From assembly GCA_965649765.1 (NCBI GenBank), contig OZ287748.1, forward strand, positions 76,384,001-76,448,000: a stretch of DNA of 64,000 bases, given 5' to 3'. Positions 5,791 through 37,500 of the stretch are shown here, in pieces (the first letter of the stretch is position 1; every line of letters begins with the position of its first letter). A program made the position numbers and the translations under genes. Source of the stretch: Bispira polyomma (lineage: Eukaryota). Under the pieces are notes generated by a model. The model ran no database searches and was not told where the DNA came from. It saw only the letters and a list, made by a program, of their open reading frames with translations.

Positions 5791-8006
5791 CTATTAGTAT
5801 GTAAATAAACTAGATAGGGTAGATCAACATCAAATAAACTAATATATTGCAGCTGCTGACTTCTACTTCAAGGTCATAATCACAATGGCGTGGCATGGTG
5901 GGTAATTATGTTAGGAACAATTGAAATGGGCAGGAATGGGGGGGGGGGGGTCATTCATTCAAATATGCCTTGGTTGATATAGGGGAAAGCAATGTGATTT
6001 ATTTATTGTATACAAGTACACAGTTACAGTGTATACGAGTACATTATGATGGAGAGCTTGCCCAAAAATTAAAGAAATTATAATGACCTCGTACATTTGA
6101 GAAAGTTAAACAAATCCAAGCAAGTCAAATAATTTAAAATATCATACAACAACGACAATGTATTTAATATAAATAATAGTGGAATGAATCTAGAAGATTC
6201 ATTATGTAAAATATTTAACATTTTATCATCCATTAAATTTTACTAAAATTCTCCTTCTAATTATTCGGTAGTTCACCAAGTTAATAAGTACACGTATGAG
6301 ATAGTATGTTTCGTATACGAGGACGTTATAGTAAAAAAAATTCCACATGGAATATGATATAGATTTGTTTACATTTGGCTCAATAAAGCCTTGTGAAAAC
6401 ATGGAGTGTTTATTCAAGGCATAAGAGGACTTCAATGAGTTATTGAAATGCCCCACATAGGTGGGCAACAATTGTACAATAATGGTGTTCTACAAACACC
6501 TCAGGTAAACATGTGTACAAGAAGAAGAGCAAGTGTCTTTCTGACAGACATCTGATACACTTTTACTGACGAAAGATTTATTTAGAAACCCATATCAAGA
6601 TAATTTAATTAATAAGGACAGAGTTCTTCTCTTTAAATTGGAAATATATCCTTCACAGAATGTTGGATTGACTGAGTAAGTTGAATATCTGCTGTAATTA
6701 AATGCATGTAAATAGTACAGTAATCAAAAACCTCTATTGTTGTGGAAACAATAGCCTAGCTTTAGATTAATATTTGTCATTCCTTTTGAAACTTAATTCA
6801 AATAATTTATTTTCACCCAGTAAAATTTATCCATATAAATACTTAAGTACTAGTTTCTTATTTGTTGACCAGAAATAGACTTGAGGAAAGGAAAGAAACT
6901 GTTAGTCGTATGAATGGATTTAAAAACATTCAACTGTTTGAATGTGATTTTCTGGCCAAACTAAAGATGACACTAGGCCATGAAAACAAAATACAGCACA
7001 AGCATAAGATACTAAAATATAAGATTATGTATCTACCTAACAACCTTTTGACACACTTTTATATTTCTCCAAATGTTTATAAAAAAGCTCTCAATAGACA
7101 TCAAATGGGGATATCAATGGTGTAGAGTGTTTACATAAATGGAGGACTAACTACTGCAGTGATTCATTATAAATAACCCACTTGGCTCGATTGATTTACT
7201 TATAGGATTTCTTTAAGAGCACTAGTCCTAAATATCCCCCCGTGGTGTTAACAACAGCATGTCTGTGGGGATTTTTATACTCCAGAGGTAATTATAATCT
7301 ACCTTTGCCAAATAAATGCTAATAGATAGCTTTTGGATGATGTCGGATATTTAATGGTTGTAAGATATTTATAATTATAATATAAAGGGAGAGAGGCACA
7401 TCAGTGATACACTTATAGGGGACAAAGATATATGGTGAGTCTCGAGAGCTGTGTAATATAATAGGTACTTGTTATCAATAGAGATATGACACTAAATATG
7501 TCAGCTAGAATTTCTGGTGGATTTACTGTAATCTGTTGGCAGTGACCCCACAAGGAGATATCCCTAGGTTTGTCAATACATATAACATAAACATGCAATT
7601 TAAGTAATCTAAAGAAATTCGAAAAAATACATTAAAAATAATTTCCGGCACCTGTTTGAAATTAGATCGTACTGATCATTATATACTCAATCAGAATATA
7701 TACATTACCAATACAAGGACTATTTCACTTTAATGAGGGATTAATGGTTACTAATAAAGGTTTGCTATATTTGTGTTAGTACATATGTGGGATAGGATCA
7801 GTTCATTTTTGTGGTAAATGTTTGACATATATATATGTATATCAAATCACGAATAATAAAATTTAATTATAATAAATATTATCAACAATGATTAATAGTA
7901 TCAACAATGTCAATGATAACAATGTAAGAAAAATGCTCTGGTAAATTTTAACATTTGGATTATAATCATTGTTGTATGAAATGTGACATTATATATTTTA
8001 AAACAG

Positions 8007-9827
8007 GGCAAGAATTTCTACTGGACAACAACAGATGTTCAAATGACAGAGAGAAAGCTGTTGTCAAACGCCTCACTGCTGTCAACAAGCCCCAGAGTGA
8101 TCTTCCATACACACACAGGAGCCACTGCTAAGGGGTATTTCAAAAGGAAGAACATAAAGCTGTTACCTTTAGAATATAAACATGACACTTTGACGAATAA
8201 GAAATCCACGACATCAGGAAATTATACATCCAAAACAGGTAATGCTGGTAAAATGCCCTCAAAGACGGAGAAACCCTGTGGTCACACAATGATTGATCAA
8301 AACACTTTGATCGATGAATACAAGAGAATTATAGAACGCCAACAGGAACTGCCTGATATAAACATCAGGGTTAATTCTAACAGGGGCAAGGTTGACATCA
8401 AGGCAACTGGTGTGAAGAAGACTCCCAGGCAGAGGAAGCTTCGTGAAACAGAATGGAAAAAAGGTAAACCAATGTTCACTGAGGGATTAAGTTCTAAAAG
8501 TGCTCAAGAGGATCCGGTGTTTTATTTAAGGAACCAACTGGTGATCAACTCCAACCATCCGGGAGGTGTACACTATGTTCGGGATAAAAGTAAGCTCATC
8601 TTGGAAGCCACGGTGGGTAATCACAGAACAAAGGGTAAGGATAATCCTGCCAAACATAGACAAACTGTCAGTTCTTTATCAATGCCTAAATTAGTGGAAG
8701 CTCCTATCTGGGGGAAGCTGACCGAAGGTGTCCAGGTGACGCGAAATAATACAATATTGTTACCTAAGGTATTAGTAAATCAAGAACTTCCTTTGATAGA
8801 CGCAGTGAATAGAGTTAGTGTACTGCATACTCCACGGGATGTTATGAGTACTGACTTAATTTGTGTAACTGATGAGGTAGCACAAACTGCTACAAGTGTG
8901 AGTGCTATGTCCATTTTAAGGAAGTCTGAATATCCTGAGGACATCAAAGCTCCCCTTAATAGCCCAGTGAAAGCCACACAAAGTTTTGTATACCCCATAC
9001 AGAGTCAGGATAATATTAGTCAAGAGTCCCCTGGAAAGACAGGTGTTCATGAAACCAATGATGCCATATCTCAAATGTCCAGTCGGAGAGGTGGAAGGAG
9101 ATATCCCGAAGCGCCTTCGGTAGTGAGTATAGGTAATAGTGATGACATAGAGTTTACCAGAAGATATAGACCAACTGGTAAGTCTTCTGTGGCAGGTATG
9201 GATTTTAGTGATTTGGAAACCAGACCAAATACGATGGAGTCACGAATGGCCTTGTCCACACCCGGAAGGAAGCTTCAGTCAAGGAAACCACCTCTGGATT
9301 CAGTGTCACTCAGTGCGATTGAGTCAAGTGCTGCAACTCAAAGCAAGGTAGTCATATCTGAGGGGGAGAATATGGTGTATAATTTTGTCTATAATAGCGA
9401 TAGAAAAACGGAAGCAAACATTCCGAAGATCATGTTTGGCGATCCGGTAAAAGACAGTAAAAAACAGGATAAAAAACTAAACAACAGTAAACTCAGTGAT
9501 TTATATCACAGAGGAATAATACAATCACAGAAAGCTGACCACTTAACTCCAAGACTGAAGACTAAAGAAGACATAAGTAGTATAATCTATGGTAGTAAAG
9601 CCAGTGGACACTCAACTTTAGCATTAGGGAATCCCCCTCCATCCTTGGCTACTGCCACTTCTAGTCCACCGTATGATTTCAGTAAGCACAGTCAAATGGG
9701 TTTGAATGTCTTACATGAGCAGAATGACCAACAACTGGAGGCAACAGACAAGAGTGTGTTACATGTGACTGAAATGACACTACAGCTTGAGGATGTTGTC
9801 GGTGAATTTCAAAGTAATGCTAAATAA
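8007..9827 (+). CDS. Large terminal exon of an uncharacterised ~606-aa Ser/Thr/Lys-rich, probably disordered protein
   Basis: Uninterrupted 614-codon ORF in AT-rich DNA, higher GC than flanks, acceptor ttttaaaaCAG|GGC at 8006 (phase 0), stop TAA at 9825-9827. No recognisable domain. Confidence 0.8.
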   Translation, partial: GKNFYWTTTDVQMTERKLLSNASLLSTSPRVIFHTHTGATAKGYFKRKNIKLLPLEYKHDTLTNKKSTTSGNYTSKTGNAGKMPSKTEKPCGHTMIDQNTLIDEYKRIIERQQELPDINIRVNSNRGKVDIKATGVKKTPRQRKLRETEWKKGKPMFTEGLSSKSAQEDPVFYLRNQLVINSNHPGGVHYVRDKSKLILEATVGNHRTKGKDNPAKHRQTVSSLSMPKLVEAPIWGKLTEGVQVTRNNTILLPKVLVNQELPLIDAVNRVSVLHTPRDVMSTDLICVTDEVAQTATSVSAMSILRKSEYPEDIKAPLNSPVKATQSFVYPIQSQDNISQESPGKTGVHETNDAISQMSSRRGGRRYPEAPSVVSIGNSDDIEFTRRYRPTGKSSVAGMDFSDLETRPNTMESRMALSTPGRKLQSRKPPLDSVSLSAIESSAATQSKVVISEGENMVYNFVYNSDRKTEANIPKIMFGDPVKDSKKQDKKLNNSKLSDLYHRGIIQSQKADHLTPRLKTKEDISSIIYGSKASGHSTLALGNPPPSLATATSSPPYDFSKHSQMGLNVLHEQNDQQLEATDKSVLHVTEMTLQLEDVVGEFQSNAK

Positions 9828-13222: not shown

Positions 13223-13430
13223 AGGGTACATTGTGGCCTAGTTGTTAGAAGTGTCTGCTTCATAATCACTTGTGTGTCACCAATGTGGGTTTGAATCCTC
13301 ATGTGGGAAAGTTGTCAGGTATTTGGCCGGTGGTTTACAGTGACTTCAGTTTCTACCACTGCTGAATCTGGCCTGCACGATATGACCCTAAGCTGTTGAA
13401 AGTGCCGTAAAACCCAACCAAATTGAAATT
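13223..13430 (+). mobile_element. tRNA-derived SINE, related family B
   Basis: A box gtggcctagttg, B box-like ggtttgaatcct, shared 'atgtgggaaag' core. Flanked by aatcctttgta/attcctttgta TSD-like repeats. Confidence 0.7.
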
Positions 13431-14245
13431 CCTTTGTACCCATCAACACATCATGAAATTATTCTTGATTACATATAATGCACATCTGATTTTAGCTTCT
13501 TTTTTTGATTCGTTGAAGCCACATGAGTATATAGGAAACTGCATTTGAACAATGAAATAAATAATTTGTTGTGTTATGATTAAATGAAATAATCTGTCCT
13601 ACACCAGGGCTCGATAAATGTGTGTCCTTACATGACTAATACAATATATCAAACGTTACACCACCGGTGACATGATAGCACAAGATTATGTATATGGTTT
13701 TACATGATGTAAAAGTGTCATCCATTGCTGTGTGGCACATATGCATAACTACCCAAACTACATAGTTACTGTTAACAAGTACAATTAATGAAACTTATTT
13801 AATGGTTTTGCAACACTGTATTTCAAGAGGGTAACTGATTGCAGTAAAATGTGACACATTTAACTATATAATTTGTAGGATAATCAAACCATAATAACCA
13901 TAAATAGGTGTCAATTGTAATGAATATATACGGATACAGCTCTTCCAGTGTGTTTTCAGTGACAATATTTGTGATATCTGGGAGGTATGAGAGTCTTTCT
14001 AATATGTTAAATAAGATATTGACAAAAAAGTGTTTACTATATACTGTATCCTAATTTAAATTATTAATACATTTGTAGTATTAAAGTAATCTTTTAGTAT
14101 GTTAAAGAATCTATTTTTGTAGTATATATATTGTACATACAGCAGAAGCACTAGGAAAATTCAAATACTGTTTGGGTGACAAAGAGAATGTTTTTATACT
14201 GTTTTATTTTGGTTTTAGTATTTTAATTTAGTACACACTCAAGTC

Positions 14246-15288
14246 ATGCCAGGTAAAAAGATTGTGTTTTGTCCGAAGTGTTTGCGAAAACATGAGACAC
14301 CTGTTGGAAGAAACTGTTCGGTTAATGTGCCTGATGTTTTGGGTGAGGAAGTGGAGGTTGATGCTGGCTCGCACGAGGACTCACTGGTTCATCCGAACGA
14401 GACCGTATCTAGCACTATATTTCAGCAGCTGCAATCGCTTAGCCAGGTAATGGAGAGGATGGATCAGCGAGTCCAGCAGACAGAGGCAGCGTTGGCAGCC
14501 AACCTCACCAGTAGTAAGGCAAGTACCGTTACTTCTAGTATCACTCCTAGTGTTTCCAAAGATCTAGTCTCTGCTGTCAAAGGTAAAGCCCACCGGGTGC
14601 AGGCCAAGATACTGTCGTTCCGAGTGTCGAATTTCTGAGTCAGAACGCTCAGATTCAGTTGCAAGTCAAACAGAGGTTAAAAGACCTCCGGGCTCTCAAT
14701 GAAACTCCCTCAGGTAAAATTAAGTCTCAGAGAACTGGGGGAAACGAGGTTATTGTAAGAAAGGCGGTTGAATGGCCCCAGAATTATGTGCTGACCGGCA
14801 GTTCGAAGACTTGCCCTAGTTATGATGACTTAACCCTTGTTCAATGGGTTTGTGGCTTTACCCGGATCTCGCACGAGGAGAAGTCGACTGAAATTAAGAA
14901 CGCTATGCTAGATTACATGAGTGGCCTCATGGAGGACGCCCAAGATTTTTCGTGGGAGGCGGCGAAGGCCTGCCACACGGTAGTCCTAACAAATATGGAA
15001 ATGGACAAGCTTGGGTGGTTGGATGTCGAGAAGGTCGACCAGATCCGCAGGGCACACACCCAACGCCATGTAGGTGTATCTTTTCATGGGGCGAATGGCC
15101 GCGCTGGTAATACTGGCAGTAGTAAAACTAGTCAGAAAAAGTCAATGCCTTGCAGGTTCTTTCAAGAAGAAACTTGCAAGTTCTCTAGCTCACATAACAC
15201 AGGAGGGCAAATGTATAAGCACAGTTGTGAAACTTGTGGGGTTAGTCATAGGACCAGTATGTGTAGCAAAAAAGAGGCAAAAAACTGA
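14246..15288 (+). pseudogene. E1 gag-like ORF (one frameshift near 14600-14660)
   Basis: N-terminal CxxC...H.....C (CPKCLRKHETPVGRNC), coiled-coil segment, and C-terminal Cys/His zinc-finger cluster CRFFQEETC...H.......H.C..C...H....C. Confidence 0.8.
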
Positions 15289-15299
15289 GGGGCCACTGC

Positions 15300-17748
15300 T
15301 TGAATGCAGTGGACAAAAAGGTTGCAAATACTAAGGTTGTAAATAGAACTGTTTATGGCACAGGCTTCAAGTATTTTGATTTATTTGAAAAAAATGTGTA
15401 TCAGAAAATGTGTAAATACATGAAGGTCAAAAGGCCGAATGTTAGTTATAGTGAGGCTTTAAAAAGTACTGCTAGTACCAGAAAATCAATGTTTGTACAT
15501 AATACTGGACATACAGAAAATTTGAGGCATACAAAGGTTGGCAGAGCTGAACCTAAGAATAATGTTGACACCTCGGCTGCCACATTTATTCAAAGGTCTG
15601 AAAAGGTAACACCTGTAGTTGGCACCTCTATTCAAGTGGCTAAGAAGGTGACACCTATTGTGAAGCGACCCCCATGCACAAAGCAACAGGGCGTGGAGAC
15701 AAAAGGTGTTAGAATATCGACTCAGAGGGGGGGCGAAAAGAGCCGCATCAATGAAGTTAATTGTGGTCTTCAGCTTAACAATAGGTTTTCCGTGTTGACA
15801 CAAATACCTGTGGAGGACAATGCAGCCATTGTGAGGGTCGTTCACTCTAGTACCACGCCGGGTAACAATGGGGGCTTTGCAAAGCACCAAGAGACAAGTA
15901 CTTGCACAGAATGTGTTAATGAAAATGTTGAAACCTCTAATAAGTATTCGTGTGCTTTAAAGTACAAGAAAAATAAACGGGAGTTGCTGCAAAAGGCGGC
16001 TTCAAATCAAACACACAAAAAATGGCAGGACCAGAGCTTATGGATTTACTCCTCTCTCGGCTTTGGGAAGTGAGATTGCAGACCATGGTGGGGGAGGGTA
16101 CAAACTATCCATATTACAAGTGCATGAGAAACTACGTCTTGATGGCAGGCATAATTATGCTGGCCTCCAAATTCCTGTCTATTCACAATTAAAAGCAAGA
16201 ACTTGGGGGAAGTATTTACAAACATACTAGGATTGGCAACTGCCTCTCCTCATAAAATATGGATTCTCCCTTGATGTGTGTTGCACAGTTCATACCGAGT
16301 CGAATGAAACTAACCATAAGTCGGCAGAGGAATTTCCTCAGCATGTAGACACATATATGAAGGAAGAGTGTGACTTTGGGGCAATGCTTGGTCCTTTCGA
16401 CACTCCACCAATTCGGAATTTGCATTGTTCCCCTCTAATGACCAGACATAAACCCAACTCGCTTAACAGACGTGTGATTGTGGATTTGAGTTGGCCTCAA
16501 GGGGCTTCAGTAAATGCAGGAGTGTCTCCAATTTCGTATCTGGGTGTCGATTTTTTACTGTCTTACCCTTCTATTGATCACCTTATTAGTGAAGTGTCTA
16601 AATTGGGAAAGGGTTGTCAGATATTTAAAGTAGACATGTGTAGGGCATTTCAACACGTCCCTATCGACCCTGGTGACATTGACCTCTTAGGGTTGAAGTA
16701 GAAATCTTACTATGTCGATAAATCGCTGCCATTCGGTTATTTGAATGGCAGTACTATTTTTCAACGAATTTCGGATGCAGTGCGTTTCATAATGCACTCA
16801 GAAAATCATAACGTCCCCAATTATATAGACGATTTTTTTATGTGTATCACTTCCCAGCAAAATTCAGAAAACGTTCCTAAGATTGCAAGAATTGCTTGAC
16901 GAACTGGGTCTCACCATTAGCCAGGAAACATTGGTTCCACCCAACACTGAGGTAATCTGCTTAGGCATAATAATCGACACAGTCAAATGCACAACTTCTA
17001 TCCCACCTGAAAAAATGGTAGAAATTCAGAGCAAGTGAAGGGATTGGGCTTCAAAAAATTATTGTACCAAGAGAGAATTACAGTCCTTACTGGGCCTCTT
17101 GCTATATATCTCTAAATGCATTAAATGTGCCCGGGTTTTCTTAAGTAGAATGTTGGAACTGCTATGAGATAATCATAGTAAAAAGAGAATTATAATAAGT
17201 GATGCATTCAGACGTGACTTAAATTGGTTTAGAACTTTTGCAGAACAGTTCAATGGTGTCTCCTTCTTCTTACATAAACCCATATCAGGCGAGATAGAAT
17301 TGGATGCCTGCCTTACAGGTATGGGGGGGGGGGGGATTTATGGAAATCAAGTATATCAAATTAAAGTTCCTATAAGTATGACAGAATACAATATAACTTC
17401 TCTGGAAATGTTGAATATTTTGGTAGCAATGAAGTTATGGGTCCAAAAATGGAAGGGTCAGAGAGTTCTAGTGAGATGTGATAATCAAGCAGTAGTCAGT
17501 GTCCTACAGACAGGACGTACTAGAGATTCCACATTGGCCACCTATACTAGAAACATATACATGTTAGCTAGTAAGTTTGACATTGAAATTGTTGTAGTCC
17601 ACATTCTAGGTAGAGAAAATAAAGTGGCTGACTTACTTTCCAGATGGGCCGAGACAAGAAGTAACCACCTATTACTAAACTAACTGGCTGGACCAATTCA
17701 ATGGCTTCCTGCCCCTGAGAACTTACTTCATGTGAATACTCTTATATA
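15300..17748 (+). pseudogene. E1 pol: long N-terminal extension, reverse transcriptase and RNase H (several stops and frameshifts)
   Basis: YGFSLD, NHKSA, MLGPF, HCSPLM, RVIVDLSWP, FKVD..RAF, LPFG, NYIDD (~16820), LQSLLG; RNase H DACL.G.GG, LEMLN, CDNQAVV, HILG.EN.VADLLSR. Confidence 0.92.
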
Positions 17749-17774
17749 GCAGGTTTCAGTTTTTCTTTTTTCAG

Positions 17775-18760
17775 GCACTCACCCTGTGGGTCTGGCTTTT
17801 ATGAAAAGGGCTTGTGATAGGCTGAACTCAGCACTCACTCCAGCCACTAATAAAGCATATGACAGAATGTTCAGACAGTACCTAGCTTTTGGAGCCTTCA
17901 TATCGTGGCCTCCCCACAAGGTGACTGTGTTGCAAATTTTAGCATATTTAGAGTTTCTAAATTTCAATGGTGTATCGGCCACTCAAGTAGTAAATCACAT
18001 CTCGGCTATAAAAGCAAAATGTGTCATGTTTCATATCGATGTTCAAGTATTTTCTGATCAGAGAATTTCTTATTTCACTAAAGCCTTCGCTATGCATAAA
18101 CCTTTACAAGTTAAGTTGAAGTCAATTTTTGATGTGCACTTGCTTAGGGCTCTTATCAGGAAATGTGATAGCACTTACATGGGCCAAATTTTCAAGGCTG
18201 TTTATTTGACAAGTTTTTTCACATTTCTGCGTTTATCCAATTTGTGTCCTCATTCTATGGGGTCTTACTCTCCTCTCAAGCAAGTAGCTAGAGCTGATGT
18301 CTTATTTAAGCCAGGGCATGCAGTCATTATGATCAAATGGTCAAAAACACTGCAGAGAAATGATGCAGTTCGATTGCTAACCATCCCAAGTATACAAAAT
18401 TCAATTCTTTGTCGTGTTCAGGCCTTAAAAGCTGTGTTAGCCATCTCACCAAAAGGGAAAAATCTTCTGTTATTTCAGTTTAAACTTCAAGGCTCGTGGG
18501 TTCCACTAACGGACACACGTGTGTGAAGGCACCTCAAAAATGTACTATCCTTACTTGGTACCCAATACTCTGGCTTGACCTTTCACGCTTTCCGACGTTC
18601 AGGTGCGACCTTTGCGTTTAACAATAATGTCAAAATTCAAGATATTCAAAGACAAGGCACCTGGACGTCGGATTGCGTTTGGCGTTACCTCTCAGACTCT
18701 GCTGATGCTGGTACTCAAGTTGCAGATTCTTTTAAAGACGTTCTACAAAACACCTACTAG
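17775..18760 (+). pseudogene. E1 tyrosine recombinase (one premature TGA at 18524-18526)
   Basis: Catalytic-type motifs FLRLSN (R), KWSKT (K), HAFRRSGAT (HxxR), QGTWTSDCVWRY (Y). Preceded by a polypyrimidine tract and CAG acceptor. Confidence 0.93.
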
Positions 18761-18847
18761 TTTGGGGTTTGGTGGTCTAACTTAAATATTTAGGCTTAAG
18801 ATCTGGCAAAATAGAAAATAACACTAAATATTATACCTTTTTGGGCA

Positions 18848-19141
18848 TAAGGTCCCCCTTTATTATATTAGTACATATTGTACTCAAGTATCTAAAGTTC
18901 GACTTAAAACCCTAAGTCAAACTTTAGAGTAGCATAACCTTAAAGTTTAATCTCTTAAGTTTGCACTTAAACAAAAATTTCTACCAAACTTAAACTCATA
19001 ACCTTAAATTCAAATCCTCTAAGTTTGGACTCAAAGTCAAATTTGGCAAACTTAAACTCTTAAACTCATTGTACTTAAGGTCACTTAAACGTAAGCTTTG
19101 CATAAGCTCAAGGCCTTAAACTCACTTGAGTTAAGGGGACC
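18848..19141 (+). other. Structured 3' non-coding module of E1 (multi-hairpin, closing stem GGTCCCC/GGGGACC)
   Basis: Hairpins at 18870-18884, 18892-18927 and 19114-19136. Two ~64-bp tandem units (18933, 18997) each carry a taagtttg...caaactta stem. Confidence 0.7.
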
Positions 19142-19328
19142 CACAACAGTATTACGTATTTTACAAAGAAACTGTATATATAAAGTATGCTAGTAGTAGA
19201 AATCATATATGTATAATAAAGTATTTAACCGCAATCTCTTCTTACTGTGAGTTGTTAGTTAAATAACTATAATCTGCCCACACACCGAGGAACTGTGAAC
19301 TGTGCATCTTTCTAGCATTAGTATTAAT

Positions 19329-19425
19329 TGGAGCCTCAGTATTGTCTTCAGGAAGCCTCAATGTATCACACGGAGCCTCAGTATCACATGGAACCTCAGT
19401 ATCACGATGGAGCCCCAGTATTTCT
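19329..19425. repeat. Short tandem repeat, ~5 x 18-21 bp (GGAGCCTCAGTATCACA)
   Basis: ggagcctcagtattg, ggaagcctcaatgtatcaca, ggagcctcagtatcacat, ggaacctcagtatcacgat, ggagccccagtatt. Confidence 0.8.
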
Positions 19426-20214
19426 GGAACAAGATTCCTGCAGATATCAAGATTATTATATTAAAATGACTCCTTACTTAAATGAATTATGTCACTGAAA
19501 TTTCCCTTTTTTTTCTTTCTTTCTTTTCATAGGTTAGGGGATCGTATTGGTCGATAACATAAGGTGGTTGCAGAGCTGAGCTAGCAGGGGAATTTCAAAA
19601 TAAAATTTTATTTTGATATACATGGAATCTGGGCTTCAAGATGGCCGACTAGCAACAGAATTAGAATAATGACTGGCCGGTGGGCATACGTGATTTAAAG
19701 GCTATATTATATATGTTTCTTTTAAGCATGGTCCATTATATATTCAGTAAACTGTGATCTTCAGGCTTGCCTGTTTTTAAAAATCTATTTTAGTGGGAAA
19801 CTGGTTTTCCTGTAACTTTTACACAACTATTAATGTATCTAAAGATTATAGCAGTTCTTTTGTACTTGCAGTTGTTATATGTACCATGGTTAATTGGTAA
19901 AGTGTGATATATATACATACAAGGACGGTCAATAGTAATAAAAATGATTCCCAGACCAATCACTGACAATTATAACTTTTTGGGGTTTTTTTGACATTTT
20001 GGTTTCATTTAAAATTTGAAGTAATTCAGAATTTTCAGTGAGGTCCATCCAGATCTTTTTATTTACTGTTTATTTGTTTTAAATTCATGCATCTGTTGTT
20101 TTATTATAAAAATATCTATGTTTCAGTGTTTTGCAACCTTTTTGTATCTTTCCAGCTCTTTTCTCTATTATTTTAGCCATCCATATAATAATGAAAGAAC
20201 TATGTGACATTTCA

Positions 20215-20355
20215 ATTTCACAACATTCACACCGACCTATGGTAAGTACCTGACAAACTTCTCCTCAAGAAGAATCAAACCGGATTCAAACCCACATTGG
20301 TGAAAGGCCAGTAATTGTGAAGCAGGCACTTCTAACCACTAGATCACCACGGCCT
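20215..20355 (-). mobile_element. Partial family-B SINE
   Basis: Reverse complement resembles 13223-13330 (ggattcaaacccacattggtga...cacttctaaccactag). Confidence 0.65.
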
Positions 20356-26300: not shown

Positions 26301-29300
26301 ACAACACAAGTATACAAAGCTCCATTTTACACTTAATGTTCATATATTCATTTCTTGAAATATGGAAAATTGATTATATTACTTTATTACCTCAAGCTGC
26401 CATGCATGCTTTAGAATACAATCCCTTCTCTAGTTAAGGTGGTCTTAAACCGCCATGAATCTGTATTTTATTAGGTTGTCAAGTTTACCTTAACTAAACT
26501 ATATTATTAGTAATGCTAAGCTTACTTTATTTGGTATCTTAGTTAATGTGTGCAATTAACCATTTTATTATGTATTTACTTTTGTGTGTTTTGTATGTAC
26601 TTCTGTTTTTCTATTGGTTTGTGTCGCTGGGACGAAGGAATGAATTACGTCAATGTGGTGACTCACACATAATTTTTGTTTGAGGTAAGAATGCGGTAAA
26701 CTCTAGGTGTATTTGCAAACAAAAATTCCTGTTGTCATAAAGCTTAGGTCAGTTGAAACATTTATTGCTGCTAAAACACGCTCAAAGCAGTTTCTTTGTC
26801 TAAAAGGAGTTGTTATGCTCTACAAAAACTGTGCCACAAAAGGTGTTTCAAGAAAATTTAGCCTTGCAAAACAGATAGATTAATGACATTAAAATGCAAT
26901 ATATCACCCCCCCCCCCACCCCCACAACCCCCACCCCCCAAAAAAAACAAAAAAAAACATGATTTAGAAACCGTACGCACAGTTTCAAAACAAAAGCAGT
27001 TCAACCAGTACAGTGATTATTCTATACTTTTTTGGGAAGGGAGCTAAAATAAGATTCTTAATGTGCCACAGGTTTCAAAGCAAATGCATTAATGAATGGA
27101 CTCATTACTTGTGTCTGGTGTATTTAATGCATTTCCTCTCACAAAATCCTGTGAATAGTTGTCACAGCTTGTCCATAAAAGCTGAACTGAAGCGGGGTGG
27201 GACTGTACTTTGCAAACAATATGCTCTTTTATGCATGATATTTCCGGGTTTTAAAAACAAGGACCTTTGCACAAAGGTAAGGTCAAATGTGTTTAGGACA
27301 TAACAAAGCAAAAATATACTGTGTCCTTTGGGGTATTCCAATTAATTAGTATAAATAGAACCCAGTAAAATGTCAATTTGTTTTGTGTGAAACAGGATTT
27401 GAAAGGGCTAAAAGTAAGGAGCTATTCAAATAGAAAGTACTTTGGGCTAAAACCATGCAGTTTATTAATTGGTCTGGAAATTTTGTGACTGAATTCATAA
27501 CTTATGTTTCCTGCTAACAAGGGATCTAACTCTGACATTGTTATGGGGCAATGATCTTCAATAATGAGATAGAATATTCATATGCAGACGAAGCATCCTT
27601 CTCAATATTAAAGTATTTTCCCAGGACTAAACAATAACTCATGAACCAATTTACAAGAAATTTTGTCAAGGGCTGGGCCACGTAAGGATCCAGTAAATGT
27701 TAGCCAAAGTAGAAGGGTGAATTCAGGAATTGTTGTAATGGGGGTATTGGTAAGCACGCTTTTTCTAATATACATAAACGTCATTGCTGGTAGTGAAAAC
27801 TAGTTGTGAACTTTGGTTAAGAAAGCATGCTTTGATTTGTTATGTCTATTTGTGATAATGTAATAAAGAATCACTATGTAGTAAATAAAAATATAACAAC
27901 ATAGGCCATTCGGTAGAGTGCATACCTCATGTCTCATGTCAAAAATGATTCTGTCTGCTCAATTCATCAACCAAAAGTGGGCAAATACACAATGTACTTT
28001 TACAGAGGTCCAAAGCTTGAAAGTAATATTTTCATCTCTCCCATGGCCTTACACATGTTTTATTTCCCCGTAAGTCATTTTTAAATTGCATATATGACAC
28101 CACGTATATGCAGGTGATGTGGTTCTATATGGATTGTCATTAAAGTTGTTGATGTTCAGAACAAGTGCTAGTAGAAGCATCAACCCAATTAAACTGCTGT
28201 AATCAGAATTGGATGTCATTTTATAATCTTAAGCTCAAAAAACATTACTCGCATTAAGGAATATGTTAGAGCATTTGATACACATTCTCCGTTTCATAAT
28301 CTTAAGCTCAAAAAACATTTTTCGAATTAAGGAATATATCAGAGCATTTGATACACATTCTCTGGCTAACCCTAATGCCAAACAAAAGTGAAACCAGCAG
28401 CAATTTAAGATTTCCTCATTCTGTTCTTGGACTATTTGCTAATGTTTAATATTTTGCAAATATATTTGTTACTATACTTCTAATTTGTAACTAACTATAG
28501 TAAGTTTGTTGCTACCCATTATTGTTTGTCTTCTTGGTAATGACCTTTATTTCTGTTTTTGAGAATTTTGATGTATAATTTTTTATTTAGATGATGAGCC
28601 TATGAATCCACTAGTGGAGAGATTGAGTGCTTGGTTATAAGAGTGATTGACTCATCGTTCATATGACCTGCAGATAATTAGCTCAGTCAAAAAGGTGACT
28701 TTTGCCTTTGTCCCCTGATTGGTTTGTCTGTCACTATGTTTACATATAAACTATCGAATTATGTGAAATTTGGTGGAGGTGTGGGGTATGCGCCAAAGAT
28801 AAATATGTTATGGATAGAATCCATGGATCGGATTCAGGTATAAATCTTCTTAATAATACGGTATGCTGGATGTTATTTATTTATTTTCAGGATAAATATC
28901 AAATTAAAAAGCTTTTGTGTTTAGGTAAGCTAAATAAGTCTTTACATATATATTCTAGTGGCATATATTTTCCTGAAGAACTAAAAGATCCATATATAAC
29001 CCTGCTGTGATAGTACTGTATATATTTTTTGGCAGTAGATAATATGTTCTCATAATAAACTAGTGTAATAACAGAGAAGGGTGTGGGTGCGAGACAACAA
29101 AGCTATATAAAACCTATTATCCTATGTATCAATCCTTTTATTGTTAATATTTGTTACTTTGGCCTTTGTACACTAAGGACCAAAATTTTTGAGCTGGTTT
29201 TAAAAACACACAAGCATGTGTAAAAACTATGATCAGGAGATATTAGTTTAATTTTAATTCCCCATGTGTAGAATTTAGTAGGAAGCGCCAAAGCCCGGGC

Positions 29301-31293
29301 GGGTTTAGTTCTTGGGGTACCAGACTAAACTTAACTTGACCTAGATTGTGGCTAGTATAAAAGATGGCTCATTTCAGACAGCTCATTTCAAATTCTCTTG
29401 CCTTTCTTACTTTTGTTTATGAAGGAACAACTTAGAAACATGGCGTGGTCGTTGAAATTTTGTTTGTTGTTAAAACTCGCATATTGCACTGTTTTAGTGT
29501 TTTTTTTAATACCATTGCTTTATTTCAGCATTAGTTAAAAATAACACGTCTTATACAGTTGTTTTAAATGTATGGAAAAGCATAAAAGGCCAGTCAGGAA
29601 ATATTGTGTATATTTGAGCAGAAGAGACATAGAAGAGGGATCCGCTGTCATTGCTGGCCCCAGTGTTACAAGTGTCTGGTCTCCAGTTCTTGATGGTCTG
29701 GGTTTCGGGACAAATACTACTGCAACTGCAATCTATGTTCCAGATGATGGAAAAAAAAGATCAGGTGCTTCTCACGGAGATCTTGATGGCTAAAGATCTT
29801 ACCAAAAATCAGGCGAGTAGTAGTTCTGTTTCCGAAACCAGTAATGATAACGTGGTAACAGTAAGTATGATCCCTAGCGTTGAGTTTTTAGACAAAATTC
29901 GGCCAATCAGAGCCAAGTAGAGAAGAGGCTCGTTAAGCTAAATAACCTGACCAAAGATAAAAAAAATCACGGAGAGGGCCCAATGTATTGGTAAGAAAAT
30001 TGGTCGAATGGTCCCAAAACCATGTTCTATTCGTCAGCCTCAAAACTTGCCAAAGTTATGACAATTTGTCCTTAAACAAATGGGTGTCCGGATTCACCAG
30101 AATAATTTAAGATGAAAAATCACAGGCGGTCAGAGAAGTAATGCTCGAGTACATGGCGAATCTGATGGAATACTACAAGGCATGTCATGCTGTCGTTTTA
30201 TCAACAATGGAAATGGACGAGTTACAATGAACGGATGTGGACAAAATAGACCGGTTAAGATGGGCCCATGCCAAAAGGCACATAGAAAATAATGGCAGCT
30301 CTCAGGGCATAGGTGCACAGGGCGGTAGTAAAACAAACATCAATTCCAAGCAGAATTCTGCTACTTTTACGTTCTTTCAAGAAAGAACTTGCAAGCACAA
30401 CCTGCACAATTTGACTGTAGCTATTCATAGAAGTTGTAGCCCCTGTGATGGCAGACATACTTGTAAGGGCTTCATTTATCTCCACTGATAAATAAGCTTT
30501 TCAGCTCAACCACAAAAAAGAATAAACATGAGTTGTTAGAGAAAGGAAAAATGGATAAAATTCAGGACAGCATAGGTTGTAAAATCTGGAATAAGAATTT
30601 GGACAATCCGGGTTATGATATATTGGAAATGCATTAAAAACTATGTGTGATGGCAGACATAATTATAATGACCTCATAATACCAGTAAATTCACAGCTAA
30701 ATGCTAATAGGTGGGAACATTATCTCGACAAATATTAGGATTGACAATTGCCTCTTTTGATTAGGTATGTGTACTTGAAGTGAACCTTGAGAATATCAGC
30801 CAAACAGGTTGGGAAATCACAAATCGGCTACAGAATTTCCGGATCACGTAGATTTCTATTTAAGAGAGGAATGTTGCCATAGAGCAATGCTCGGACTGTT
30901 TAAAAACCCTCAAATTAAAAATCTTCATTTTTCACCAATGATGACACAAAATAAATCTAGCTCAAGTAACAGGCAGGTCATCGTTGATCTGAGTTGGCCA
31001 AAAGGCGAATCAGTTAATGCTGGTGCTTCACCCACCTGATACCTGGGCTCTGAACTTTTACTGTCCTATCCTTCCATTGACAACGTAACTAATGAAGTTC
31101 TAAAACTGGGAAAAGGTTGTAGAATATTTCAAATTGACGTAAGCACGGCATTCCGCCACTTACCCATTGGCCTCAAATAGGGTTATTATTACATAGATAA
31201 ATCCCTGCCATTCGGATATCAGAATGGCTCCACTATTTTTTGACGTCTTTTGGATGCAGTTAGGTTCATAATGTACGCTGAGGGTCTTAACGT

Positions 31294-32076
31294 TGTTACA
31301 TATAAGGACATTGTGGTATGTTAAAGCACTCTGCTAGAGTGATCTATTTATAGATTTGGGGAAACTCTTAAGCTTCTAGAGGCTGTTTCTATTTTGTTTC
31401 TGTTGTTATTGAAGCTGTTCTTATTTGTTTACATCTCAATCTGGAACATTCTAGCAATTGTTCACATATTCTAGCAACCTTCTCTAGCGGTGGTATATAT
31501 AAGGATTGACAGCCTGGCCACAGACCAGAGATTATTGAGTTGGTGTGCTATATGAACTGCTATACTGTGAAACATTTTATTTCTTTTCCTGTGGATATAA
31601 ACTGATTACTACATATGTTTTTGTGGTGAACTCATTGGAGTGAACTAGATAAAAGTTGTGGATCTACCAGAGATTGGATTTACTGCATATTGGATATTGT
31701 TTGCATCCTGGACTGGATAGCTTAGTTGTGCAGACTCTCTGGATATATACATTTTGTGTTTGTGGACACCGAACGGATAACAGGATACAGGCATTGTGTG
31801 GACACCAAGTGGATTTCAAGACAGATTGCTGGATACAGTGGACAAACTTGTTTAATTGTTATTTATGTGGACAGGACTGTGGTCAGGTCAGATTGGTTTC
31901 ATTATTGTATTATTGTATGAACCATTAAGAGTATCTCGGTTGACTGTGATTCTGTAATTCTGTAATTGTTATTTTATTTGTTAAATAAATTTGTTAAGTG
32001 AAACTTTTTGTCTTTTCCTGTTACAACCTCAAAGCAACCGGTAATTGCTACCACGCTTGCTCCCGTGACCGTAACA
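31294..32076 (+). mobile_element. Solo LTR (783 bp, Gypsy-like) nested in E2 RT
   Basis: TGTTAC...GTAACA termini, 4-bp TSD ACGT, TATA-like tatatataa (~31495), AATAAA (~31984). Excision restores the RT sequence EGLNV-HNYIDDF. Confidence 0.9.
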
Positions 32077-32224
32077 ACGTCCATAATTATATAGATGATT
32101 TTGTATGTGTTTCATTACCAAGCCAAATTAATATGAGACTTATAAGAAACTGCAAGCTATTTTACCCTAATTGGGTCTAACAGTAAGTAAAAAAATAAAA
32201 AAAAAATAGTGGCTCCTAGTACAG

Positions 32225-32369
32225 CTTTTTGAATTTGAATTGGGATATTAAACGTCCACTCTAGTATCTGTTTAGGTTATATTGAGATAGGTAGTTGGAA
32301 ACGCTGGAAGAAACTTTGCATACAGTTGATCAAGGTTCTGCACTGAAACCAGAGGCCCATAGTAAGAAA
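32225..32369 (-). mobile_element. 5'-truncated family-A SINE nested in E2
   Basis: Reverse complement of the SINE 3' half (2360-2490). TSD tcctagtacag/tcccagtacag; removal restores APSTEVVCL. Confidence 0.9.
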
Positions 32370-33606
32370 TCCCAGTACAGAGGTTGTTTGCCTAGAGATA
32401 ACACCATTGAATGTACCACCTCAATTCCGGATAAAATATTAAAATATATCAAGGATACATGTACTGCATGGAAATCCCAAAATTGTAGCGATAAAAGAGA
32501 GTTACAATCTCTTCTGGGTTTGCTGTTGCATGTTGCCAATTGCATTAAGTATATATTAAGCTATTAAGCTAATAAAAGATAACCACAGCAAAAATAAATT
32601 TCCTATTACTCCTGAATTTAGATGTGACCTAAACTGGTTTGCAACATTTATGGAGTAATCTAATCTAATCACAAACCGGTTAATGCTCAGATAGAATTAG
32701 ATGCCTGTTTAACCGGAATTGGGGTTTTTATAAGAATAAAGTCTATAAACTTGCAGCACCGGCTGAAAAAAAAGAAGACAATATTGCATCATTATAAATG
32801 ATAAATATACTGGTCGCATTAAAACTGTCCACGTGAAACATATATATGTGGGCAAGTCGGTTCGACATAGAAATAAGAGTTATACATATACTTAAGTCTA
32901 ACAATAATGTGGCTGATTTGCTGTCTCGTTGGGACAAAAATTACGAGCAGCTTTCGCAAAAATAGGCGAGGTCTGTAACATGGCTTCCCACTGATGAATC
33001 GCTTCTAGAAGTAGACAGTAGTATATAAGTTACAGGTATATATAATTTCATGTTATAAAAATATATCCAATGGATAAACTGCTGACCAGGATGGCTGGCC
33101 AGAGGTTACATTCTGCTTTCGCTTCCTCTACTTCAAAGGCTTATGAGAGTATGTTTAGGCTTTTCCTAGCTTTTGGGATCTTTATGAACTGGCCCCCACT
33201 CAGGTAATCGTTTTTTAATATTCTGTCATATCTTAAGTTTCTCAGTTTCAATACTGTATCTGCCTTTCAAGTTGCCAACTATCTCTCAGCAGCTAAAGCA
33301 AAATATATCTTGTTTCATATTAACTTTGATGTATTTTTTGACCCTGGAATATCATACTATACTAGGGCATTATTGATTAATAGACCCCTTCAAGTTAAGC
33401 TTAAATGTCTTTTTAATATACCACTTCTCACTGTTTTGGTGGAGAAAAGTGTAATTGTACCTATATGGGACAAGTGTTTAGGGGAGTGTACCTTACAAGT
33501 TTCAGTTTTCTGAGGCTTTCTAACTTGTGCCCCCATTTCATTGCTACTTTTTCACCTCTAAAGCATCTAGCCAGGGGGATGTACTGTTCAAACCTGATTA
33601 TGCGGT

Positions 33607-33838
33607 ACAGAGGGGGGGACAGCAATTCATGGTGGACAGCATTTCGCCATTAATATGGTTATTACACCTAATCACTGTATAATATTTATTTTGAAGGACT
33701 TATTTTCGCATTATAATATTCATATAACATACACATGCCTACACCACAAATATATAGAATACTGTCTGCCTAAATTTATAGTCGAAAACAATGCAAACCA
33801 AAAATGCTGTGCAACTTATTACTTTGCCGGCTGTCCAG
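33607..33838. mobile_element. Truncated Tc1/mariner-like MITE in the E2 YR ORF
   Basis: TA|CAGAGGGGGGGACAGC left end, remnant ggctgtcc at the right end. YR codons between DVLFKPDYAV and CPVLALKNLL are missing. Confidence 0.6.
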
Positions 33839-34290
33839 TACTCGCTTTGAAAAATTTGCTGGATTTCACCCCTCTGGCTCAAACTTGCTTTGTTTCAATA
33901 CAAATTGTTGCCTTCTTGGCTCCTTCTGACTGACACACAGGTCACACGCCATTTTTAAAATGTGTTACAAATGCTTGGTTTGAAAAATTAAAATCTCACT
34001 TTCCATGCTTTCCGACGTTCCGGTGCCACATTTACATTTAATAATAATGTGTGCATCCAGGACATTCAACTTCATGGCACCTGGACGTCAGATTGAATGT
34101 GGTGTTATATAACGGATTCGGCCCAAGCAGGATCACAGGTAGCCGAGGCTTTTGCTCTAGCTTTACAAAATACCCTTAATGTGTCTGGGTTTGGTGGTCT
34201 GTCACATCTAATGTGTCAGATTTCAAGATTATATACAAATATTAATGTCTTTAAAAATCAAAACCTATAGTAAAAATATATTACTGTACT

Positions 34291-34500
34291 GGGAATAAGG
34301 TCACCTTACACCAGTCAGTACAAAATGTACTCATTTATCTCTATCTTGACTTAACATATAAGCTTGAAAAGTTAACTGAAGTTAAGTCAACCTTAAAAAA
34401 ATCTAGTTTTGGTTCACTTACCTCCAAATTTTGTAACCTTAAACTTAATTTAAGTCAATCTTAACTATTTATCAAACTCAATTTAGGGTGACCTTATGCC
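34291..34500 (+). other. Structured 3' non-coding module of E2
   Basis: Closing stem ggaataaggtcacctta / tagggtgaccttatgcc; hairpins agtaca-aaa-tgtact (34317-34331) and ttgacttaac...gttaagtcaa (34346-34390). Confidence 0.7.
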
Positions 34501-37500
34501 TTCAACTCAGAACTGTATATACAAACTGGTTGTCTGAACATGTAGTACCTAAGAAAATTATTATTCCGCAATCTTTTCGCTGTGTCATATAAATGCAAAT
34601 ACTTCTAAATTACTCTGCTACCCAGAGGAACTGTGTGTGTCAGTACTTTTATTTTTTCATTTCAGGTCAAACTTTCTAGTGATAACTGAACTTATTTTTA
34701 TAACTTATTTAATGTCTTAAATGGGATTCCTTTTAGGGAAACTATAGCAACACAAAATGTCAAATCATTCCACCCATTGTGGGTTTTCACTATAAAAGAA
34801 ATGTGGAAGACAAATAGATCTTTCTTTAGACCTCTGTCTGGAAGTTAGCCCTCTAGTGTGATGGGTTTCTATTGCCGTTTATAGGCAAAATACCTTTGTA
34901 CACTTTTTATTAGCAACATTCAAAGGCCGTGAAATGTGTTTGATGTCACAATTAACCCAAATATATTTTGAAAGTTAACATTTTTATTGGGCTCTGCAGC
35001 TAAGATTGAACCACAAGTATGAAATGGCGATGTGGCTGTAAGCGATTATATAATAGTTAAATATAAATAAGCTCCCTTATAAATATTTGAACTGATGGTA
35101 AACCTAAAATAACAACTAAGATGTAATAACGGAGATATAGTGCTTCCAAGATTGTAAGCAAAATTAGCAAAATTATGTAGCGGTAAAATGTAGCGTGTAA
35201 ATATCATTTAGTGAATATTTGTAGCAAACTTCCTCTAGAATATTGTTAATTATATTTAGTACATTTTTCAACTGTCAAAAGTAAAATTAACTTTACGTTC
35301 TACGAAGTTTAAATAACTTTTTAAAGAGTATTTTTCAAGTTATAGAGTGTGAAAATCTTTTCAAGGACACGGTCATAACTTCAAAGTCAGAGGTCAAATT
35401 GAGGTCAGACAATGATGCTTCACATCTGTACTCATAAATGTGTATCAATACTTCCTGTAGAAAGTGTGGTCGTGAGATCTAGTAATGCCAAGCAACACAC
35501 TCACTAGCCTGATAGACCAATAAATGGGACAACTATACTTGAATAGTCAATCTACATCCGTCCACCGATTTTAATTTTTTTTTTTAAATGTTTATGTTTG
35601 TCAGGCTTTAGAATTCCTTGTATGAAGATTAGGTGCTATAAAAGTTCGACTAGATTAGATTAGTTATGGCTGCAGGATAAAAATTGGATATCTGCACCCT
35701 CATGTGCAAGTACAATTGTTATCTTCACCAATCTTCAATAACCTTAAGTTATTACCTCAACCTTAATATTACAATGTAAAAAAATTATTGCTTTGTCAAT
35801 GCATCATATTTACATATATCTAATTGCAAATCAGAGAATAATTTCGGCATATAGTGATAATTTCATGGAAAAAATGCACAATTTCAAAATTAGATTTGGT
35901 CTTCTTTATAATCTTCCATAATCTTTTATATCTGTAGAGCAAGGAAAATTTGCTGTCTTTGTTAAATCCGTGAGAGTAACTGATTACCCCCCCCCCCCTA
36001 CCCCCCCCCCCCCCCCCTTAACAGTCAGCGCCTGAAATCCCATGCACTGTGGTTTGCAGTGACATTTAAATTCACCACAGGAAATAACTGTTAAAACTTA
36101 AATAAAATACACCATATATTGGGTGGCTTAACAGCAACATAGCTGTGCTATAAAAAGAGATCATCTAGTGTTCCATCGCCCTTTCCACTGCTTTATCTAC
36201 TAAGTACTGCCCGTATATGACGCTTATTATGGATCCATCATTATTTGAAATGTAAGGTGTGATGCCAGTGTTAATAAAATATATTAAGCCTTATGCTTGT
36301 GCAGTTGTTTTATGGAAGTAAGCATTCTAAACAAAAAATGACGAATTATCTATTTACTCTTATTGATATTGCTTCTTTATGGTTTGACTTCAGAATTCAT
36401 GACAACTCATGCTGTCAGCTTAACCACTTTGAAGCATGTTTACTTAAAGGTAGAAATCAAAACAATTGGTTAACATAAGGCAATTCTCTTTTCCAATAAT
36501 AACCAATATACAAATTTGTACATTTGCTCTGTCTGTTTGCATATTGTTCTATACTTGTAGGTTGTTTACATAGTTACAAGGTTTTGTTTACAAATCGTGA
36601 GTATCCTATCAGATCCTGGTAACAGTTGGAAATGATATGTCCACCCAAAACAGCAAGAATACTGTACCTTATCAATATAAAGCACACCAAGGAAGGTATT
36701 TAATGTCAAAAAGTTTTTGTAAACCCGTTGGGGCTATCGTTATTACAACTGATGATGAACAGATGGTTAAGTTTTTAAGATTACATTAAATAAACCATAT
36801 ACATGTAATCAGTGATGCTAAGCCTATCATATTTAGCATCTTAATTAATGCATGCAATTAACTATTGTAATATGTATTTAGGTTTTAATGTTTTGTATTT
36901 ACTTCTGTCTTTCTAATGTTTTGTGTTGGTGGGACGAGGGAATGATTAATGAAGTAATGATAGCTGTACAAACGTAAATTGTCACAGTTTGACATTATGT
37001 CAATGTAGGAACTCACACATAATTTTTGTTTGAGTTAAGCATGAGTTGAAGCTCTAGGTGTTTTTGCAGACTAGTATGCTTGTTGTCATGAAGCTCAGGT
37101 CAGTTTAAGTATTTATTTCTGCAGGAAAGTAAAAATGTGGACCCTTCTTGCAACACAGTTTCTTTGTCTGAGAGAAGTTCTGATGGTCTATTAAACTATG
37201 TCACAAAAGGTGTTTTAAGAAAAACTACCTTTGTCAAAACAGATTGATTTGTGACATTAAAATGCAGTAGATCAAACCCCCCAAAAGAGTTAAGATTTAG
37301 AAACCTTAAACACAGTTTCAAAACAAAAGAAGTTCGACCAGTACAGCTATTATTCTTTACTTTTTTTGAAAGGGAGCTCAAATTAGATTCTTAATGTGCC
37401 ACAGCTTTCAAAACAAATGCATTAATTAATGGACTCATGAAAATGACTTGTGTCTTGTGTATTTAATGCATTTCCTCTCACAAAAACCTGTGAACAGTTC

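Follow-up and report, generated by a model that had tools for sequence, protein, structure and literature searches.

A conserved near-palindrome and its closing stem within repeat B of Ngaro-like tyrosine-recombinase retrotransposons in Bispira polyomma

Retroelements of the window and their split direct repeats

We analysed a stretch of 64,000 nucleotides from Bispira polyomma (GenBank assembly GCA_965649765.1, contig OZ287748.1, positions 76,384,001 to 76,448,000 of the forward strand), hereafter the window, in which the region behind a tyrosine recombinase (YR) gene, at 18848-19141, had been described in a reading of the letters alone (the sequence-only reading) as a covarying multi-hairpin module. 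The window contains at least four YR retroelements, E1, E2, E3 and E4 (Table 1), and the module lies in E1. We found that it is the core of repeat B, inside a known split-repeat architecture, and that its conserved part is a 13-nt near-palindrome, copies of which form the arms of a closing stem. E1 encodes Gag, reverse transcriptase (RT)/RNase H and a recombinase, with Pfam matches to RVT_3/RT_RNaseH in E1 and to RVT_1 in the related E4. The recombinase fragments of the window had no Pfam match of their own at E 0.01; a recombinase fragment had 53 homologues at E ≤ 1e−5, some of which carry PF00589 or PF13495. Pfam identified no methyltransferase domain in E1, and the space between the end of the RNase H frame (17683) and the start of the recombinase frame (17786) is too small for one. 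Gag, RT/RNase H and recombinase without a methyltransferase is the gene content of Ngaro-type elements (PMC4157794, PMC9210276). The recombinases of E1 and E2 match at 46-65% over aligned segments. The longest open reading frame in the window (7983-9827, 614 aa) had no Pfam match at E 0.01.

The boundaries of the repeats were mapped on 40 other copies from the same genome. Intact members of the E1 family have the order A1 (156 nt, with a TATA box), genes, B1 (~530 nt), A2, a non-coding spacer (~1.05 kb) and B2, with A1 identical to A2 and B1 to B2; in copy L038 (oriented coordinates) A1 at 1986-2141 equals A2 at 7266-7421 and B1 at 6739-7269 equals B2 at 8470-8998. B2 lies ~1.6-1.7 kb 3' of B1 in L038, L039, L040, L021 and L025. 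Repeat B of E1 starts at 18772, 12 nt past the stop codon of the recombinase, and we regard it as the counterpart of the U3 region of a long terminal repeat (LTR). We also took 11 homologous elements from two other assemblies (L071-L081), whose recombinases are 37-58% identical. The four with clear repeats (L073, L074, L076 and L077) have the same split-repeat architecture, long spacer included, and in L073 the two A copies are 100% and the two B copies 99.7% identical. The spacer between A2 and B2 measures ~0.9-1.05 kb in all intact elements of the clade (L038, reverse complement, 7422-8469; L073 7838-8768), and a gene caller predicted nothing in that of L073. As A2 has its own TATA box, A2, spacer and B2 could be a second, non-coding transcription unit.

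Split direct repeats are themselves textbook for Ngaro elements, and the arrangement A1, B1-A2-B2 goes back to Goodwin and Poulter 2004, as related in PMC4157794 and PMC9210276. Our elements agree with it in their gene order, in internal repeats 3' of the recombinase and in the identity of the two A and the two B copies. They differ from it in the long spacer, and also in that most E1 copies end at the end of B1, without A2, spacer and B2. Recombination between B1 and B2, in the manner of solo LTRs, probably explains these shortened copies. The window copy of E1 is damaged in its own way: the first ~127 nt of A1 are gone, and the region behind B1 is reduced to the remnants listed in Table 1.

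The sequence-only reading had not recognised the module as a described feature of DIRS elements. This holds to the extent that Rfam 15 gave no matches at gathering score in the whole window and none at E ≤ 1 in 18700-19350, and that our literature search found no published description of a conserved palindrome array or closing stem inside repeat B; the region as such, however, lies within the known B repeat of Ngaro elements. The terminal inverted repeats and internal complementary region (ITR/ICR) of DIRS1-like elements were also considered. They share with our elements the presence of internal sequences related to the element ends, but we found no inverted repeats at the termini here, and, a TA-repeat excepted, neither the A1 leader nor the spacer is complementary to B over ≥ 10 nt. 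A 66-nt inverted pair around E1 (13233-13298 and 20282-20347, 85% complementary) resembles, by eye, two opposite heads of short interspersed elements (SINEs) derived from transfer RNA, unrelated to the element.

The near-palindrome and the closing stem

The near-palindrome TAAGG-NNN-CCTTA (also written TAAGGTNACCTTA) occurs in 2-6 copies per module and is conserved across ~15 families and three genomes. It was found 25 times in the window, against 4.8 expected, and clusters behind each recombinase gene there. In the two other assemblies it is enriched behind the recombinase in 10 of the 11 elements (30 copies in 11 kb vs 14 in the other 71 kb, ~14-fold, P ~5e−24), and many of the matches outside the first 1 kb are B2. 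The sequence behind the recombinase follows a common order: stop codon, GGGGTTTGG, a variable stretch, the 13-mers, UGUAWAUA, AATAAA or ATTAAA, and ...ACTG. Spacing between copies ranges from 20 to 285 nt and orientations are mixed, although L073, which carries ~110-nt tandem units, and L081 have same-orientation arrays only. It should also be noted that GGGGTTTGG(T/C) is conserved at or just past the recombinase stop in all families, where it marks the start of B.

Searching the Bispira polyomma genome for AAGGTCACC-N15-45-GGTGACCTT gave 307 loci, with very varied loops, vs 1 for the control pattern. Often two of these loci lie ~1 kb from each other, the arrangement that B1 and B2 of additional families would have. 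By central pair the genome-wide hairpins comprise T-A at 307 loci, C-G at 1 and a mixed TCA...TGG (U.G or C.A) at 101, a count which took no account of element orientation and hence gives no wobble evidence. One family of mixed-pair hairpins stands in tandem at a spacing of ~1137 nt (C5:72599435, 72600572 and 72601709, among others) and may be an array of non-autonomous A-spacer-B units.

The arms which the sequence-only reading had placed at the ends of the two modules, GGTCCCC (18851) with GGGGACC (19135) in E1 and GGTCACC (34299) with GGTGACC (34487) in E2, are where it put them. The closing stem is stronger than it saw, since the window copy of E1 has been cut by a private 9-nt deletion directly past 19141. 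The intact 3' arm reads GGGGACCTTATGCCCA in 28 of the 29 other aligned copies (L024 carries substitutions in the arm) and pairs with TGGGCATAAGGTCCCC over 16 bp; four intact copies, when folded, had minimum free energies of −84 to −97 kcal/mol. In the E2 family the arms are TGGGCATAAGGTCACC(TTA) and (TAG)GGTGACCTTATGCCCA, with three extra pairs beyond the 16 bp, one of them a U.G. Of the 16 pairs, 15 are the same in E1 and E2, and at the remaining one a compensatory change exchanges A-T for C-G, while the interior between the arms is barely alignable, and only at hairpins 1 and 2. In the E1 5' arm (window 18854-18858 and the corresponding alignment columns) individual copies have a run of 5 to 11 C opposite a G-run which is always 4, so that the closing stem has a bulge of variable size.

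The inner hairpins with AGTACA/TGTACT and GACTTA/TAAGTC stems which had been reported for both modules were likewise present, and the two 64-nt units of E1 were recovered as a direct repeat (18933-18996 and 18997-19060; 77% identical over 48 aligned nt). The modules were then compared with 200 dinucleotide shuffles per module and strand, and both were far more stable: the E1 + strand folds at −72.4 kcal/mol vs −43.9 for shuffles (z −6.3), and z was −7.2 for the E1 − strand, −4.4 for the E2 + strand and −3.7 for the E2 − strand, with 0 shuffles as stable as the real sequence in each of the four tests. For nine further families z ranged from −2.0 to −4.4; that of E4 was −4.35. The palindrome copies of E4 include an 18-bp hairpin (56156-56210) with its central pair flipped to G-C. 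The region behind the recombinase is therefore conserved between families and foldable beyond chance, as had been proposed, and is probably functional.

Table 1. Features of the YR elements; positions refer to the window unless a contig (C) or another element (L) is named.
Feature	Position	Strand	Remarks
E1	14140-19299	+	Ngaro-like YR retrotransposon copy; boundaries from 10 long family copies
E1 tyrosine recombinase reading frame	17786-18760	+	in-frame stop at 18524-18526
GGGGTTTGG(T/C) sites	18764-18780; 34187-34200; L071 2972-2985; L072 6987-6998; L073 7000-7013
E1 repeat B (B1)	18772-19295	+	entire 3' untranslated region (UTR); last bases GGAACTG; block recurs as B2
E1 closing stem, 5' arm	18842-18857	+	TGGGCATAAGGTCCCC
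E1 hairpin 1	18870-18884	+	AGTACA-TAT-TGTACT; 5 of 6 pairs invariant in 30 E1 copies
E1 hairpin 2	18892-18927	+	15-bp stem with GACTTA/TAAGTC core
E1 tandem 64-nt units (two)	18933-19060	+	each with a TAAGTTTG...CAAACTTA inverted pair and several CTTAA
E1 internal degenerate near-palindrome copy	19076-19088	+	TAAGGTCACTTAA
E1 closing stem, 3' arm	19135-19141	+	shortened to GGGGACC by the 9-nt deletion
E1 UGUAWAUA block	19173-19180	+	UGUAUAUA; conserved as UGUAWAUA
E1 AATAAA	19215-19220	+	likely polyadenylation signal
E1 A2 remnant	19296-19299	+	first four bases (TGAA); rest of A2 and early spacer deleted
E1 spacer remnant ('C')	19302-19926	+	last ~630 nt of the non-coding spacer; B2 missing
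E2	~29266-34633		YR retroelement
E2 repeat B	34190-34633	+	last bases GGAACTG
E2 closing stem, 5' arm	34290-34308	+	TGGGAATAAGGTCACCTTA (other family copies TGGGCAT...)
E2 hairpin 1	34317-34331	+	AGTACA-AAA-TGTACT
E2 hairpin 2	34346-34390	+	TTGACTTAA ... TTAAGTCAA
E2 closing stem, 3' arm	34484-34500	+	TAGGGTGACCTTATGCC
E2 UGUAWAUA block	34514-34521
E3	near 42022-42916		YR element remnant
E3 near-palindrome copies	42674-42916	+	six 13-nt copies
E4	~52977-56250		YR element
E4 palindrome copies	56118-56212	+	right behind the recombinase gene
Junction outer stems			AACTG/CAGTT (E1); TACTG/CAGTA (L073); GCACTG/CAGTGC (L077); CCACTG/CAGTGG (L074, L076)
Junction hairpin	L038 (reverse complement) 7240-7330; L073 7620-7700; L077 3975-4040; L074 3900-3985; L076 3945-4025
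TGGGCATAAGGTATCC copies	C1:101351; C3:622796; C8:717159; C8:798947; C11:555617; C11:632981; C13:450920

Pairing between the arms and its possible role

Covariation was examined between families by anchoring the terminal stems of 12 families at AAGG/CCTT and comparing a 10-bp core. We found that 111 of the 120 cells pair, against 103.1 ± 1.6 when the 3' arms were exchanged between elements (P ~8e−5). Four columns change state between families: T-A in 7 vs C-G in 4; C-G in 8 vs G-C in 1; A-T in 10, C-G in 1 and G-C in 1; and A-T in 11 vs G-C in 1. In the family-specific outer extension of the stem 51 cells pair vs 37.1 with shuffled partners (P = 0.0014), and the core gave P = 0.003 in the six elements with only two copies of the motif, which leave no choice of partner. 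The extension TGGGCAT/ATGCCCA, common to E1, E2, L071 and L072, lies outside the palindrome and is yet complementary. These results come from a test with fixed arms, hand-picked in 6 of the 12 families, which replaced a version with best partners; we report both.

It should be noted that several results limit the case for selection on pairing. The best-partner permutation test was not significant (P = 0.42), and several of the compensatory states may each be a single event. In the E2 family (22 copies) the RNAalifold consensus reached only −5 kcal/mol with 0 compensatory pairs, and in the E1 family (30 copies) there was 1 compensatory cell in 2550, with a covariation score (0.014) equal to the shuffle value. 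Among the changes of a young E1 subfamily two strengthen one helix and others break pairs, with no trend in pairing. The within-family check suggested for the module (RNAalifold for E2, shuffles for E1) thus gave no significant signal, although copies decay neutrally after insertion and such tests therefore weigh little either way. The stems of hairpins 1 and 2 are the same in E1 as in E2, which leaves no covariation to be seen, and the two hairpins are not a general feature of the other families. We conclude that there is real, if modest, covariation, and that the closing stem alone has it. Of the covarying multi-hairpin module originally proposed, what stands is a closing stem which is compensatory between families; the inner hairpins are invariant or family-specific. 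In the same way the proposal of a selected RNA or single-stranded DNA structure is supported for the closing stem, which pairs beyond partner shuffling, and finds no covariation to support it in the inner hairpins.

Repeated local inverted duplication could also give complementary arms without any selection for structure. On a rival reading the module has no function of its own: a tolerant 3' UTR would have accumulated tandem and inverted duplications, perhaps through template switching in reverse transcription, and kept them by hitch-hiking. The 64-nt units of E1 are a plain tandem duplication, L073 carries its ~110-nt tandem units, the content of the loops is unconstrained, and the data from within families show neutral decay only. 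However, the 13-mer stands at the same place, as measured from the recombinase stop and from UGUAWAUA, in elements from three genomes with recombinases of no more than 40-57% identity, and in E1 and E2 both 16-nt arms agree at 15 of 16 positions although the interior has diverged, and we consider an absence of function distinctly unlikely.

The reading which we favour, with a probability of roughly 0.42, is that the module is a cis-acting fold-back of a single-stranded phase, recognised by a protein in packaging or at the onset of reverse transcription. The outermost inverted copies of the near-palindrome would pair into a 10-19-bp stem enclosing 20-285 nt, and would do so in a single-stranded stage of the element, which could be the genomic RNA, at its 3' end (just 5' of UGUA/AAUAAA), or the first-strand complementary DNA (cDNA). 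A protein of the element (RT, Gag or recombinase) may then recognise the fold-back as a duplex of specific sequence, and the RNA would thereby be singled out to be packaged or to begin reverse transcription. The module is composed of 2-6 near-palindromes plus lineage-specific duplications, to which E1 adds its CTTAA-rich 64-nt units. The data show that the module lies in B, that its motif is conserved, that a stem is present and that arms of one element match each other in excess; that the module acts as a single strand, which protein it meets and at which step are what we infer. A fold-back which rebuilds a specific duplex fits both the conservation of a motif in variable number and orientation and the excess complementarity within an element, and the fixed place of the stem in all families, between the recombinase stop and UGUAWAUA, argues for a function.

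Stem-loops in the 3' UTR of "stringent-type" long interspersed elements (LINEs) are recognised by the element's own RT and are common to the partner SINEs. The resemblance is that a retroelement RNA has a conserved stem close to its 3' end, on every unit which is to be copied; LINEs are, however, another class of element with another mode of integration, and binding by RT is only hypothetical here. Closer to our elements, the primer for reverse transcription of DIRS-1 is unknown (PMC7192593), and Poulter and Goodwin, as cited in PMC7192593, proposed that a hairpin at the 3' end of DIRS-1 mRNA acts as a self-primer. The fold-back reading fits this open question of priming in DIRS-type elements and also that proposal, since both concern a fold-back near the RNA 3' end of a YR retrotransposon whose primer is unknown. 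The two structures differ in that the DIRS-1 hairpin, in the same account, comprises ~14 nt at the very end of the transcript, whereas the stem here is 10-19 bp long, encloses up to 285 nt, lies 5' of the poly(A) signal and is made from a motif found across families. Packaging, priming and end closure of DIRS, Ngaro and PAT retrotransposons are largely unknown, and a motif and stem at one fixed place in the 3' repeat of many families, in at least three genomes, amount to a defined cis-element which can be mutated, probed or turned into bait for proteins of the element.

Some observations count against a fixed RNA fold and sit more easily with a cluster of binding sites on duplex DNA, in which the 13-mers would be bound by a dimeric protein and foldability would be a by-product of the palindromes. 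The sequence of the near-palindrome is itself conserved, in all the families and genomes noted above, and not merely its pairing; its copy number, orientation and spacing vary widely, as in clusters of protein-binding sites; both strands of the E1 and E2 modules fold about equally well; and the wobbles, U.G on the + strand in E2 and L077 vs one A.C in L072, decide for neither strand. The half-motif CTTAA occurs 14 times in the E1 interior against 1.6 expected in total, with 11 of the 14 in the same orientation, and B lies directly 5' of the TATA-bearing A at every B1-A2 junction. The protein could be a host transcription factor, in which case B would act on the promoter in A as a U3-like enhancer; alternatively, the motifs could be accessory sites beside the B|A crossover for the element's own recombinase or Gag. 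The half-site AAGGTCA presumably resembles the half-sites of nuclear receptors, and if the motif were a host transcription-factor site the result would be a more ordinary one. Independent binding sites need no matched arms, however, so the greater complementarity of arms from the same element than of arms from different elements, even at positions which are variable in the motif, counts against a binding cluster, as does the complementary TGGGCAT/ATGCCCA extension. The enhancer version also has to contend with a full-length transcript which starts in A1, without B upstream. Overall we regard a duplex-DNA binding cluster as unlikely, if still a real prospect.

3'-end signals and the B|A junction

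UGUAWAUA lies 22-56 nt behind the last palindrome in 8 of the 9 elements in which it was found, and 102 nt behind it in L073. AATAAA or ATTAAA was found in 7 of the 11 elements of the two other assemblies and stands 54-133 nt downstream in six elements. UGUAWAUA is probably an upstream UGUA element and AAUAAA the poly(A) signal that goes with it, in which case ~100 nt would separate the stem from the RNA 3' end; UGUAWAUA also fits a TATA box and what we assume to be the Pumilio consensus, UGUANAUA. The stem could on this basis modulate the poly(A) site such that B1 is read through and transcript ends fall in B2. In favour of this are the fixed short distance of the stem 5' of UGUAWAUA, with AAUAAA next in most families, and the split-repeat replication model, which, as inferred from the architecture, needs read-through of B1. 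However, B1 and B2 are identical, so that the stem alone cannot distinguish the two sites, and polyadenylation control seems to us very improbable indeed.

Copies of the E1 family begin with TGAAAG... and end with ...GGAACTG, and the boundary GGAACTG|TGAA falls at 19295|19296, which places the crossover ...ACTG|TG... ~155 nt 3' of the 3' arm of the module. The module is therefore unlikely to be the recombination site itself, and the suggestion that it is an attC-like substrate of the recombinase is not borne out, as the boundaries lie outside it, at the B|A junction. This junction has a two-tier hairpin of its own, in which the pair flanking ACTG/CAGT differs between families and the arms of the inner 7-9-bp stem are wholly different in each family; it is not present in the window copy of E1, which is truncated. 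The B|A junction, and not the module, is likely to be the attachment site of the recombinase. Together with the long spacer between A2 and B2 and the UGUA/AAUAAA block in B, the crossover at ...ACTG|TG... refines the anatomy of Ngaro elements.

A folded single-strand recombination substrate, in which the recombinase would act on a cDNA stem in the way of integron attC sites or the attP hairpin of CTX phage, was weighed on the same evidence. All three are imperfect inverted repeats which become duplex only when single-stranded, in tyrosine recombinase systems, and the stem here is a sequence-specific, near-palindromic duplex; DIRS-1 intermediates, moreover, are mostly linear single-stranded cDNA (PMC7192593). 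Unlike in attC and attP, the crossover lies at a distance from the stem, at a junction whose own conserved hairpin has much clearer covariation. Further, 0 of ~25 E1 copies are inverted or broken at the arms, and all are collinear through the module, by which an invertible segment flanked by recombinase sites was also rejected. Known core sites of tyrosine recombinases have a crossover spacer of 6-8 bp, whereas the half-sites of the palindrome are 5-6 bp around 1-3 central bases. We consider the module very unlikely to be such a substrate.

A related idea, which we hold to be something of a long shot, is that the B stem and the junction hairpin jointly form a folded single-strand attachment region, where the first-strand cDNA would fold and the recombinase would assemble. 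If this were true, the recombinase would circularise and insert the element from these fold-backs of the cDNA, and eukaryotes would have their own equivalent of recombination at integron attC or in CTX phage. Boundaries of the repeats fall on ACTGT-like words (window 19289-19299; L073 7640-7650; and TACTGTT at window 14166-14172, between A1 and the interior). ALOG domains bind YACTGTW and descend from the N-terminal domain of DIRS-type recombinases (PMC10927535). The resemblance of the junction ACTGT to YACTGTW hints at what the recombinase may recognise, and on the attachment-region reading the N-terminal domain of the recombinase would be the ancestor of the ACTGT-binding ALOG domain.

Two variants of the near-palindrome were seen elsewhere. 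The arm variant TGGGCATAAGGTATCC has seven copies, each < 1 Mb from the start of a contig, and may mark a subfamily restricted to the ends of chromosomes. Another repeat family ends in the palindrome variant TAGTTAAGGTGGTCTTA; it was read at 26340-26450 and 43210-43320, and a third copy is suggested near 60057 by a motif match alone.

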